Positions 33,701-45,700 of a stretch of 64,000 nucleotides of DNA are shown here, piece after piece. Source of the DNA: Thalia democratica (taxonomy: Eukaryota). Positions within the stretch are counted from its first letter, which is position 1. Each line of letters opens with the position of its first letter. Location of the stretch: NCBI GenBank assembly GCA_965202585.1, contig OZ241827.1, positions 64,046,001 through 64,110,000 of the forward strand. Reading direction: 5' to 3'. The translations under genes and the position numbers were made by a program. The notes below the pieces were generated by a model that had not been told where the DNA came from, did no database searches, and worked only from the letters and a program-made list of their open reading frames with translations.

Positions 33701-36700
33701 TGCTTGAAAATGTAGGAGGAGATAGATTTTAAATGAAATAGTCTTTTTTCGCTGTTTTAGTTTTCCTTTTCCATAGGGAACACTTGGCCCGACTTTGACT
33801 GGTCATATCTCAAAAAATAATTTAAATTTTTTGAAACGATAAAAAGCATCTTGAAGCTTAGAAAAAACTCAATAAAATAAGATCAACTTGTAAAAAACAT
33901 AGTTTACCCCCCCCCCCCCTTATGGCTGTTGTCTGCATACTTGTTGTTTTTATTTCAGCACAAAATGTTCTCTAAAACCTAAATCACTTTTCATTGGTTT
34001 ATTTATTTTAGTCGGTATCAACTATTAAAAACGACAAACGCAGTCATTCAAACAAAATGTTTAACTTAATATTTATAAGTTTAGCCGTTTTAAATTTTAT
34101 GAAACAAACTGCAGCGCAGCAATCGACAAAAGAGTGAAACTCCTCAAACCGTTGTTTTTTGATTATTAAATTAATTTCGCACTAGTCTGTTCACTCAAAC
34201 AGCGCAGCAAGCGATGCACAACAAAGCGTTTGTAACAACCGACTGTTGCCAACCCGAATCTAGTAATAAAGTTTCGCATCAACCTTCACTACGTTTTGGT
34301 TATATTTCGTAACACTCAACATGAAACTGCAGCGCAGCAGGCGATGGACGAGTTCAACTACGACGTGCTGATGGGCCGCAGCATGCGGATCATGTGGTGC
34401 CAGCGCGACAGCTCCAAGCGCAAGTCGAGCAAGTCCAACGTGGTGGTCAAGGGCCTTCCCCGGCGCATCGACGGCAAGCAGCTGCACGACCTGTTCAAGG
34501 GCTTCGGCGAAATTCTCTCCAGCAAGGTTCGTCGTTGCGTTTGAAAATATTTTTGAGTTGGTGTCAGGGTTGCCACACACTCAGGGAACTCAGGGAATTA
34601 TCAAGTTATAGAAAATCTCAGGGAAACTCAGAGATATGTTGTGGAATAATTTTTTGGAGAATTTTTTTATTTTAGCAAAGTACTGTCAAGCACGGTTTGC
34701 TTTGGATCGATTCTAAGTTCAATTCTTTTTTTTGCTTGGTTTAATACTGTTTAGCAAAGTTAATTAAAAAATGATTTTGGGGTGATAAGAATTTGTTTTT
34801 ACTCTATGAAGGTTTTGAAAAAATCTCTCAAATAAATCTAGGTGTGAAACAGCATTTTTTTTCGTTGAACTAACTATTTGAACTTTGTTTAGTTTAATTT
34901 TTGAGACCAAGTTTATTTTAAGTGGATAAAGACTTTTAGAGTTAAAAGATACTTATAAAAAAGTTATCATTTTGTATAACTGTGTATTTTTTATTTTCAA
35001 GTATTTTTTTTATAAGCTCAAGTATAGTGGAAAAAGTATTCAAAAGTTTTTAAATTTTTTACATTTTCCTTACAACAAGATCAGCATGTAGTATAAATTT
35101 CCACAAAAAATAAAATTTTAGTTTACTATACAACATTTTCAAATGATATTTTGTATATAAAATCAACACCTCAGTTATGTTACGTTTTATAACGAACATA
35201 ATCTATAAACTAATATAAACAGGATTGCCTTACACTCAGAATAACTCAAACTAAATTGAACTTTTTAAACCAAGCTCAGGCTATCTTTTGATACAGTTAA
35301 ACTAAATTTTTCTCATGATTCATCTTATTTTTTTCTATGTGTTAAATCGTTCTGTATTGCTGTTATCAATTTAATTATAAAAGCTCTATTATAGTTTCAT
35401 AAGGTTTAAATTCTCACCATTTACGTTTTTAACTTTAATAAGGTAAGCATGGCTAAGTGTAACTTTTGCTTCAAAAACTCTGTACAAATAACCAGGGTTA
35501 CCAAAAACCTTGGAATTTGACAATTAAGGCTAAATAAACCGGGGAAAACTTTTAATTTGAAAAATTTAAAAAAATCTAGAATTTTGAACAAAAATAACTC
35601 AAAATCCTGGAATTTTAAACATTTATTACATTTTTAAGTAGTAAAGTTTAACTTAACAAAAAAAATCTACCGTATAGATATTTTTTTTTGTTATATTGGA
35701 GATAATTTTTTTTAAACACATTTAAGCCTTACAGATTCTATTCAATGTTGAAATACTACTTCGCACACTTTTCAAACTTAAACTTAGCGTTAAACTTAAG
35801 AATAGACCTAGAAACGTTTACTTTTAAAAACCTGGAAGAAGTTTAGAAAACCTGAAAAAAAGTTCTTTAAAAAAGTTTTGCATACCTGAATAACAAGCTC
35901 TAAGCTACCAAGCTTTGAAGCAAAAACTTCCTTAAAATGGCCATGCACCGACAAGTGGAAAATGACTATCTAACACGGTTACCATGACTTGATTTTATTT
36001 TAATTCTCAGTTGGTAAGTTTTACAGTTTTACTTGGCTAAAATCGTCTTGCATTTAGTACTGAGATGCAAGTGCGAAAAAGTGTAAACTTTAGAGCTGTT
36101 AACTTTAAACAGCTTCATTTATAACGACTTTGAAATGAAACAAAAAAAAAGTTAACCCGAAATTGGGGCGAAAGTGACATATGTGGTATAAAATAGCAAA
36201 TAAGAGTTTTCAGTAAAGAAAAAATAAATGAAGTAGTAAAATTTTCAATCAAACACACACACAGGTAAGCTGCAACCGTTAAGGATTAAAAAAAATTATG
36301 TTCAATTTTACACTTGAAACGGACTGAAAACCTTGCATTTTAAAAACCTGGAAGATATTTGCAAAAAAAAAACTTTGGCAACCCTGCAAACAATTCACTA
36401 ACTATATAACTGTTCTTGCCAACCTAACTAGTTGTAACAAATTTGAGCACTAAAGAGAAAAGTGTTCGCAATCACACTGTCCCACTAACAAACTCCCATT
36501 TAAGCACTAAAGAGAAAAGTGTTCACAATCTCACTGTCCCACTAATAAACTCCCCATTCGAGAACTAAAGAGAAAATTGTTTTCAATCTCACTGTCCCAC
36601 TAACAAACCCCCCATTCGAGCACTAAAGATTAAAGTGTTCACAATCTCACTGTCCCACTAACAAACTCCCCATTCGAGCACTAAAGAGAAAAGTGTTCAC

Positions 36701-42700: not shown

Positions 42701-45700
42701 CCATTCGAGCACTAAAGAGAAAAGTGTTCACAATTTCACTGTCTCACTAACAAACTCCCCGTTCAAACACTAAAGAGAAAAATGTTCACAATCTCACTGT
42801 CCCACTAACAAACTCCCCATTTAAGCACCAAAGAGAAAAGTGTTCACAATCTCACTGTCCCACTAACAAACTCCCCATTCGAACACTAAAGAGAAAAGTG
42901 TTCACAATCTCACTGTCCCACTAACAAACTCCCCATTCGAACAGGTGTGCTGCAACCGGGAAGGGGTGTCGAAGGGGTACGCGTTCGTGCACTACAAGAC
43001 GACCGAGTCGGCCGAGCGGGCCATCAGCACGCTCAACAACAAGCTGATGGATGACAAGCGGGTGCAGGTCGAAATGTGGGTGAGCAGGGAAGACAGGGGA
43101 AACCCCCATGGTGAGTTTACGTTATTACATTGATATATATATTTCAAAATTACAGGTTCAAAAAACATTGAGTTTTCAAAAATAAAATTTTAAATTAAAT
43201 TGTGTGTTTACGTTATTAATTAGCAGATTAAAAAAATAAATTGGTTCTCGAAAATAAGTTTTAGTTTAAAATATTTGTTATTATTTGTTACTTTTGAAAT
43301 GTGGGTGAGTAGGGAAACCCCCCCCCCCCCATGGTGAGTTTACGTTATTACATTGTTAAGTTGTTGTAGTTTAGTTCAAGGGTTCCCAAAGTGGGTCACA
43401 TGGCCTCCCTGGGGGATATATTGTATAGATGCAATACGTGTACACACAATTTTACTTTAATGTGTTGTGTAATTTACACAATTGATTTTAATGTGTATTA
43501 AATTACACATTAAAAAAAATTTAGTTCTCGAAAATAATTTTTTGTTTAAAATTTTGTTTTTGTTTATTTTGAAATTTTGGCGAGCAGGAATGACGAAGGG
43601 AAAGCCGCATGGCTTGTAATGTTTAACTAAAACAACCCCATTGTTATTGTTGTTATTTTATTTTTTGCATTTATTTATGTGTGTATCGTGTAGTTTTAGT
43701 TTTGTTTAACTAATTTGATTAGATATGAGATACCCGCACGGCTAAATCATGCTGTTTGCAATTGGTTTATACCAGCAGTTCTATTTATTATAATTAGTTG
43801 TTTTGATTGTCTCAACAAAGTTTGTGCTATTCATTTCATTTGTAAAATAATTAATTTAGTTTTTATCAATATATATACATGTCTAACTGTATTTTTGGTG
43901 CTCAACATGGTTTCTAAAAAACTTATCCTGATGTATAAATTCATACTTGTAAATAACATGATCACACTGTTTTACCTCTGGCTTTGTAAGTTGTAGAAAT
44001 GAAACTATAACTTAAAGTGTTTTCTGAAATAGATCGACAACATTTCTTGTAGATAAAATATAAGCTTGTACTTGTTTCTTTTTTTGTTTGAACTAAATTT
44101 TTATTTTTCTACAATACTGATAAGCTTCAAGTAATTGTTTTTTAATCGATTAGTTAACTTTATAAGGCAAAGGTGACCTACGCCTTCAGTTCTTTAATTT
44201 TTCGGTTACATATATATATATATTTATTTATTTGATTATATAAAAAAATAGGTTTATATGACCGTTTTGTATATGTGAAATATTACCTAATATACTCATC
44301 AGTAAAATTCATTCTGATGAGTACATGAGGTAATATTTCTCATATGCTAAACGGTCGTATAAACCTATTGTTTTTATATAATCAAATAAACATTTAGCTC
44401 CAAACCAATTTGTTTAGCACTATCGACCAGAACTTAAAAAAAAACTACCAATATATAGTTATCTATATACGTATATGTATATGTGTTTTTGTGTAGTACC
44501 TATATATTTTCATATTTACTTAGCAAAAGAAGTAATTTTCTAAATGTTTAAATGCATAAATGTTTCTGCTGTAAATTTCAACAAACTGAACAGGCGACAA
44601 CAACTCGAACTACCACCAGTCCGAAGACACCTTCACCAACGTCTTCGTGAAAAACTTCGCCGACAAACTCGACGAGGACAAGTTGAAAGAAATGTTCTCC
44701 GTTGGTTGTTTTGCAAATTGAAACCCACATTTTCGCATTAATTAACAATTACCCTTAATAGAAAAGCTCAAACTGTGTATACTCGAGTTATTCGATATTG
44801 AGTTTCAAATTTAAGTTGCAGTAAAATGATGGTTTAAATACAACAGTTTATACTGTTTCAATACTTTTTAATAAAATTAGAACTAACTTTTAAGTTGAAA
44901 GCTTTTTTAAAACTTAAGTTTCAAAAGTTATAATAAAAAATATTAAAAAAATTTTTTTTAATTTGTTTTCAGAGCACGGTAAATAATTACATTAGTTTTC
45001 GGATGTTTCAGTTAAATAGTAAACTTATAAAAAATATTATCAACTATAAACTATCACTGATTTTATTCCTACTACAGTAACAGTTAACATTTTGAGGAAA
45101 ATCAACATTACGTCAAATTAACTATATTTAAGTTTTCAAAAGTTATAGTTTCAAAATAACAAATAATTTTAATTTTACACTGAGTTTCTCCTCATCACAG
45201 GAGCACGGTCGAGTGATTTCGTGCGCGGTGATGCGTGAAGAATGCGGCAAATCGAAAGGCTTCGGCTTCGTTGCCATGGCCGACCACGAGGCGGCTCTGA
45301 AGGCCGTCAACAAACTGAACGGAACCTTGGTAGAGGGTCTGTAAAGAATATTTGAATAATTTTTATTGTATAAAAAAAATTGAATTATTTTTTTCTTATG
45401 AAATTTGTAAAGTTTTTTTTTTTAATTAAAATGTATAGTACAGCGGTTCCTTTTTACCTTTTTTAACCTTTTTTTAATATTTTACCCCTTTTTGGAAGGT
45501 TTTTACCCAATTTACCATAATATACCAAATGATGTTTAACTTTAAGGAAAAAACTAGACTTTTTAAACTTTAAGCTTGTTAGATTTAAAAAATCATGAAA
45601 TCTAAAGAGTTTATTTAACTTTAAAAAATTACGGTTATACACTAACTCGAAAAGTAGAAAGACAACTAGTAGACATTAATTTACATAAATTGTAATAAAA

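Follow-up and report, generated by a model that had tools for sequence, protein, structure and literature searches.

A 58-bp intronic minisatellite of about 98 units ends at a spliced acceptor of a predicted poly(A)-binding protein gene in Thalia democratica

The 64,000-nucleotide stretch of Thalia democratica DNA analyzed here (GenBank assembly GCA_965202585.1, contig OZ241827.1, forward-strand positions 64,046,001 to 64,110,000; referred to as the window and numbered from its first letter) carries a predicted gene for a poly(A)-binding protein (PABP). The intron in front of the third exon of this gene ends in a tandem array of ∼98 units of 58 bp, most of which contain the branch-site-like motif CACTAAC, and the last unit of the array provides the 3' end in actual use. 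RNA contigs show splicing at this last unit, the depth of DNA words shows the unit in many copies, and unrelated repeats lie at other exon-intron junctions of the same gene. The array is most probably an intronic minisatellite that is neutral to selection or carries a mild cost, arose by junction-associated tandem duplication, and leaves splicing unaffected.

The gene and the array

The features on which the argument rests are listed here. A slash marks a splice or unit boundary, GC is the G+C content, scores are those of Tandem Repeats Finder (TRF), and MITE stands for miniature inverted-repeat transposable element.

34333-34526, + strand: upstream PABP exon (exon 2), with the end of RRM1 and the start of RRM2; TIGR01628 positions 54-119, E 1.5e-21; donor AAG/GTTCGT at 34526/34527
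34527-42944, + strand: intron of 8418 nt, GTTCGT...GAACAG; ∼1.9 kb of AT-rich sequence, then array and MITE
36441-37095, + strand: left block of the minisatellite, 11.3 units; TRF score 1138, 93% matches
37096-37894, no strand assigned: MITE of 799 bp, inserted in one array unit and separating the left from the main block
37895-42944, + strand: main block of the minisatellite, 87 units; TRF score 8825; the last unit is the live intron 3' end
42919-42925, + strand: candidate branch site CACTAAC of the last unit, with the putative branch A at 42924, 21 nt before the exon
42943-42944, + strand: acceptor AG (ACAG/G); the repeat homology stops between A and G
42945-43110, + strand: PABP exon 3 (second half of RRM2), 61% GC; TIGR01628 positions 121-170, E 4.3e-13

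TRF reports two 58-bp arrays in one register, 36441-37095 with 11.3 copies and 37895-42940 with 86.9 copies, both with 93% matches and without indels. A unit-by-unit parse resolves 97 full units and one that is interrupted by an insertion (∼98 in total). The units fall into 43 distinct variants, with the exact consensus occurring 20 times and a mean distance to the consensus of 2.1 of 58 positions. An exact match to the stretch CACTAACAAACTCCCCATTCGA is found in 56 units; with a tolerance of up to two mismatches, the number rises to 74. A sequence-only reading of this DNA had placed CACTAAC in each unit; it is present in 90 of the 97 full units (ACTAAC in 92), and the motif is mutated in 7. 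The main block contains exact duplications that span several units, one of 372 nt at a lag of 407 (seven units) and one of 278 nt at a lag of 291 (five units). Since exact multi-unit duplications are the signature of unequal exchange, the array probably grew in this manner.

The array accounts for 68% of the intron and the MITE for 9.5%; the other 1.9 kb consists of AT-rich sequence that in part resembles MITEs. The GC of the array is 42%, and the 58-bp unit has no further occurrence in the 64-kb window. Judged by eye, the TAA triplets in TAAAG and CTAAC, combined with the 58-nt period, stop all forward frames within three units; the reverse complement of the unit contains TAG and TGA. A scan of 34000-44000 against Rfam returned no family at its gathering score.

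The array had been taken for one continuous run, which the MITE contradicts. This element ends in inverted repeats that are perfect over 12 of 12 nt (CAGGGTTGCCAC) and has subterminal CTCAGGGAA subrepeats. Its two sides carry TAAAGA, an apparent target duplication of 6 bp (37090-37095 and 37895-37900). Deletion of the MITE together with one TAAAGA gives an unbroken unit in phase, so the MITE entered a pre-existing array. Further copies are found as well, and the element thereby shows all three characteristics of a MITE (terminal inverted repeats, target-site duplication, and further copies). One such copy lies close to the donor of the same intron.

34565-34641, + strand: a second member of the MITE family, represented by its left end and lying 38 nt past the donor; identity to the array MITE is 100% across 34 nt and 87% across 62 nt

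The plus-strand exons of the gene include 34333-34526, 42945-43110, 44594-44700, 45201-45336, 46477-46631, and 47610-47810, and these six exons join into an open multi-RRM frame of 320 residues. Exon pieces match the four-RRM profile TIGR01628 (PABP-1234) in colinear order at positions 2-54, 54-119, 121-170, and 317-378, the whole-protein cut-off being inapplicable to such pieces. The best matches in the PDB are PABP structures, with exon 34333-34526 matching 6r5k and 1cvj, and the translated joint of exons 2 and 3 (ILSSK/...) aligns without gaps with the RRM2 region of PABP. By these matches the predicted product is a cytoplasmic poly(A)-binding protein. Dispersed repeats occur in the introns at 44301-44470 and 45321-45830, with DNA word depths of 2,000 to 13,000.

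The boundary between array and exon

The inner units end in ...ATTCGAGCAC/TAAAGAG and the two penultimate units in ...ATTCGAACAC/TAAAG, whereas the last unit ends in ...CCCCATTCGAACAG/GTGTGC (more fully ...CACTAACAAACTCCCCATTCGAACAG/GTGTGC). The repeat homology covers the CA of the acceptor CAG and ends ahead of the G. This alignment of last and inner units bears out the proposal that the unit is the 3'-terminal 58 nt of the intron, ending short of the AG. The last unit of organism B (run X5), TTCGAGCAG/G, is nearer still to the consensus unit.

An inner unit differs from the true acceptor in essence by one base, CAC versus CAG. The inner units have also been described as lacking a terminal AG. 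This is correct for an acceptor AG or YAG (Y, pyrimidine) but not for AG dinucleotides as such, which the inner units carry as GAG and AAG. Their acceptor contexts are GAG/C or AAG/A, the consensus unit is devoid of YAG, and only two variant YAGs occur in the 5.7-kb array apart from the true site. The RNA-verified acceptors of the PABP gene show CAG in five of five cases. The counts of YAG and CACTAAC are small and the units recently related, so no claim of selection is attached to either.

Across the 70 nt that precede each of the five RNA-verified acceptors, an exact CTAAC occurs only in the CACTAAC at 42919-42925, a plausible branch site. At the other acceptors of this gene, CTAAC is not typical. 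On the exon side, the initial 40 nt of exon 3 were aligned locally with two consensus units, and 1970 of 2000 shuffles attain the resulting score. To judge from the alignments, the unit is purely intronic.

Splicing at the last unit

RNA data were taken from the Logan assembled contigs of two marine metatranscriptome runs, X1 and X2. One contig per run (1561 nt at a depth of 69.5 and 1568 nt at a depth of 22.4) contains exon 3 and the four next exons with GT..AG joints, the first of them from 43110 to 44594. The loose end of the RNA contig at 42943 reads TCAAGGGCTTCGGCGAAATTCTCTCCAGCA and is identical to 34495-34524, where the upstream exon ends. The joint from 34526 to 42945 is established through this match of the loose end with the end of exon 2, not as an aligned joint. 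Because the loose end equals the upstream exon end, the mRNA joins 34526 to 42945 with removal of all 8418 nt. The claim that some 98 branch-motif units of 58 bp end at a PABP acceptor is hereby confirmed from three sides: TRF together with the unit parse, the TIGR01628 match, and the RNA acceptor at 42945.

No contig of X1 or X2 uses an inner unit as acceptor. RNA from the array is represented by one 88-nt contig with a depth of 7.4 in X1, which could be contaminating DNA, and by none in X2. The consensus 31-mers occur 40-56 times per array, and by a rough depth argument array RNA reaches at most ∼0.2% of the mRNA level. Isoforms of low abundance are lost from Logan contigs, which are also uninformative on kinetics.

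The donors at 34527, 44701, 45337, and 46632 of the PABP gene are unusual (GTTCGT twice, GTTGGT, and GTCTGT), GTGAGT being present at two donors only; the joints are confirmed by RNA.

The sequence-only reading had favored a functional decoy that could sequester SF1/U2 or STAR/QKI-type proteins, slow splicing or promote retention, and so tune PABP output. Spelled out, ∼97 modules of branch site and pyrimidine stretch without a usable AG would bind these proteins on the nascent intron and slow or divert splicing or act as a sponge for the factors. Response elements of STAR proteins and SF1 have the form ACUAAY, and the core ACUAAC is shared by nearly all units (ACTAAC in 92 of 97). The motif region varies little, the motif of the last unit is located at the canonical 21 nt from the acceptor, and an intron of 8.4 kb would cost more transcription time than a short one. 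However, other stretches of the unit are equally invariant, and the motif shows no special conservation. A bipartite QKI element consists of ACUAAY followed by UAAY within ∼20 nt. In the consensus, ACTAAC is followed 19 nt later by TAAA, not TAAY (UAAA instead of UAAY in RNA), and only a few ACTAACTAAC variant units fit the bipartite element. The mRNA contig is cleanly spliced with array RNA as a trace at most, and CTAAC is not the rule at the other acceptors of the gene. An apparent several-fold difference in copy number between organisms and the presence of unrelated sequences in arrays at other junctions of this gene, both described below, also speak against a decoy. The tuning of PABP output by such an array is unsupported by these data and improbable.

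Copy number and variation

In the DNA run X3 (organism A), array words have a depth of 1616-1924, compared to ∼45 for single-copy sequence (apparent haploid depth, ∼23), which is 36 to 43 times the single-copy level. The depth corresponds to ∼35-42 copies of the consensus words per haploid genome, compared to 40-56 in the assembly, and gross inflation of the array by the assembly is therefore not indicated. Tandem arrays are error-prone in assemblies, and the estimate of ∼35-42 copies set against the 40-56 assembled would be in line with a real array much shorter than the one in the window. Such a shortening is nevertheless very improbable in view of the depth, the ordered multi-unit blocks formed by the 43 distinct variants, the MITE with a clean target duplication inside the array, and the recovery of array words from many independent marine samples.

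Organism B shows an array depth of 328, compared to ∼60 for single-copy sequence, and the same junction is present. This means that its array has far fewer copies or more diverged ones. The ratio of array to single-copy depth is ∼43 in organism A and ∼5 in organism B, contig word depth being a rough measure of copy number. Array words also turn up in several metagenomes of marine samples taken between 2016 and 2024. A search of metagenome contigs with the exon 3 peptide returned only distant PABPs (38 to 68% identity) and no orthologous intron.

Over 42771-47870, compared across runs X1 to X5, polymorphism is high: RNA contigs differ from the window at ∼2 to 4% of exon positions. The sampled 31-letter words of this region are found to 72% in organism A and to 36% in organism B, which by a rule of thumb corresponds to ∼1% and ∼3% divergence. 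Contig depths in X3 are bimodal, at ∼23 and ∼46, suggesting heterozygous stretches.

The left end of the array is close to another MITE terminus (...GGCAACCCTG), which ends at 36386, ∼54 nt from the array.

36387-36440, + strand: left flank between the MITE end and the array; contains one CACTAAC

A local alignment of this flank with the unit has a score of 10.5, reached by 68 of 2000 shuffles, a weak match by which the flank is probably one degenerate unit. The proximity of the MITE terminus and the abundance of MITEs in these introns would suit a transposon-borne or dispersed satellite that landed beside the exon and furnished a new acceptor region. The unit is, however, found nowhere else in the window, and the array is located outside the inverted repeat of the MITE. 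The depth of consensus words, ∼1600-1900 at a haploid level of ∼23, fits a single locus, whereas the dispersed repeats at 44301-44470 exceed 10,000. The chance that the array came from a dispersed element is very slight.

Other junction repeats of the gene

All TRF arrays in the window with scores of at least 150 are located at junctions of this PABP gene. Besides the 58-bp array, the following repeats are found.

30718-31088: repeat with a 172-bp period, covering the exon 1 end and its donor (TRF)
47787-60886: array of 217 copies of 59 bp, 13 kb; each unit combines the terminal 24 nt of the RRM4 exon (exon 7) with the GTGAGT donor
34106-34141, 34200-34219, 43296-43358, 46378-46398, and 46737-46766: decayed junction copies in adjoining introns
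36261-36284, + strand: uncertain candidate for a decayed acceptor with the first 20 nt of exon 3 (ACAGGTAAGCTGCAACCGTTAAGG); 20 of 24 nt identical to 42941-42964

The region 30718-31190 contains two to three extra copies of the exon 1 end with its GTTCGT donor at 90 to 98% identity. In the 13-kb array, RNA takes only the first copy (donor 47810/47811), and the contig runs on into the exon past the array. BLAST detects decayed copies of the exon 2 acceptor with the exon start, of the exon 3 end with its donor, and of both edges of exon 6. If the exon 1 repeat and both large arrays are counted, seven exon edges of this gene have copies of themselves. Since the same gene carries unrelated junction repeats, a general mutational process accounts for the 58-bp array without any function specific to this locus. 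The evidence favors what had been offered as a fallback, a neutral minisatellite seeded at the junction.

The exons of the gene have a GC of 49 to 62%, compared to 23 to 28% for the other introns. In the exons from 42945 to 47810, third positions are GC rich, and there is a sharp GC step at every junction. This step may be relevant to the clustering of duplications at the junctions.

Tandem repeats that span exon-intron boundaries were named "mirages" in amphioxus Adh3 and are also known from globin, troponin C, and PGBD5 genes, where splicing is undisturbed (PMC3087553, PMC3902484). The 58-bp array might be a true mirage by origin, with a first duplication that crossed the acceptor and included exon sequence, the exon part having decayed or been lost before the 58-nt amplification. 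The 20-of-24 match to the acceptor and exon start at 36261-36284 lies upstream of the array in the same orientation and differs from the exon by G-to-A/T changes, as expected in an intron of 25% GC; decayed copies that span the acceptor also exist at exon 2 of the same gene. None of 2000 shuffles reaches the score of this match locally, but its window-wide BLAST E value is 0.12, and it is located within MITE-like sequence. The unit and the exon start are dissimilar, as the shuffles described above indicate. A mirage origin is on this evidence possible but unlikely.

Proposed origin and maintenance

The preferred explanation, a neutral or mildly costly minisatellite, starts from an originally short intron, probably of 100 to 200 nt. 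The last 58 nt of this intron, including the branch-site-like CACTAAC and a short C/T-rich stretch, would have been duplicated head to tail, with the right breakpoint splitting the acceptor AG after its A. Unequal exchange or replication slippage would then have enlarged the array to ∼98 units, frequently through the addition of whole blocks of 5 to 7 units, and the MITE would have been inserted later than the array growth. The underlying process would be one that places tandem copies at exon-intron junctions in this gene, the same phenomenon as the amphioxus mirages. The inner copies may be tolerated as copies that have no competitive acceptor and are distant from the exon. The last unit would win as the sole one that has CAG/G and borders a GC-rich exon, whose donor follows 166 nt further on. 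Exon definition and the rule of the first good AG would both fit the use of the last unit.

Several points weigh against this explanation. Low-level cryptic or slow splicing would be compatible with contigs that drop rare isoforms. A boundary inside the AG would not be predicted if intronic duplications struck at random. The occurrence of the array in two organisms and in several marine metagenomes may reflect either recent common ancestry or its retention by selection. A combined scheme takes up the breakpoint inside the AG: the arrays would come from a process mechanistically coupled to junctions, through the GC step or through transcription or splicing, and this array would, as a kinetic brake in cis, slow the removal of its intron. 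If both were true, PABP output would depend on a hypervariable repeat length. This scheme is distinctly improbable.

Relation to known systems and significance

The amphioxus mirages of Adh3, the globin genes BflGb6 and BflGb9, troponin C, and PGBD5 share with the PABP array the anchoring of tandem repeats at a junction, with the innermost copy as the live splice region, and normal mRNA splicing despite repeated splice signals (PMC3087553, PMC3902484). Length variation, as far as contig word depth reflects it, and concerted evolution would be further common features. Both in amphioxus and in the gene described here, the repeats are found on either the acceptor or the donor side. Mirages by definition include exon sequence, in contrast to the PABP unit, which appears purely intronic and has no complete splice site. 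They also differ in scale: the PABP array comprises ∼98 units over 5.7 kb, compared to 3 to 6 units of ∼150 bp in the globin mirages and units of 10 to 72 bp in Adh3. The PABP array is thus an intronic minisatellite set against a junction, with splicing at the exon-adjacent copy and a unit that does not span the boundary. It is filed as a variant of the mirage kind, neither a member of it nor a new mechanism. The 13-kb array at 47787-60886 belongs to the same gene, has a similar unit length, and is likewise anchored at a junction with only the exon-adjacent copy in RNA. In contrast to the 58-bp array, which is devoid of an exon part and of a complete splice site, it is a classical mirage with 24 nt of exon end and GTGAGT in each unit.

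The 37-bp variable number tandem repeat (VNTR) in intron 7 of human F7, a natural model for splice-site choice, has a first element that spans the exon 7 donor (PMC1557585). Like the PABP array, it was seeded at a junction and multiplies splice signals, with splicing confined to the exon-adjacent copy. The F7 repeat is located on the donor side and consists of few copies with fully functional pseudo-sites, whereas the PABP array is located on the acceptor side and consists of ∼98 copies that supply a branch site and a pyrimidine stretch but no good AG. A literature search on salp and thaliacean genomes, with PMC10686999 among the papers, brought up no mention of minisatellites or junction repeats.

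The array does not demonstrate a new regulatory mechanism. It is a large example of a splice-junction minisatellite, acceptor-sided and intron-only, in which a branch site is repeated ∼98 times with correct mRNA splicing. This makes it a natural substrate for the question of how the spliceosome selects one branch site and one AG among many that are nearly identical. The 58-bp array and the 13-kb donor array jointly show that in this genome most of the length of an intron can come from junction repeats (∼68% of the 8.4-kb intron), which bears on intron growth.

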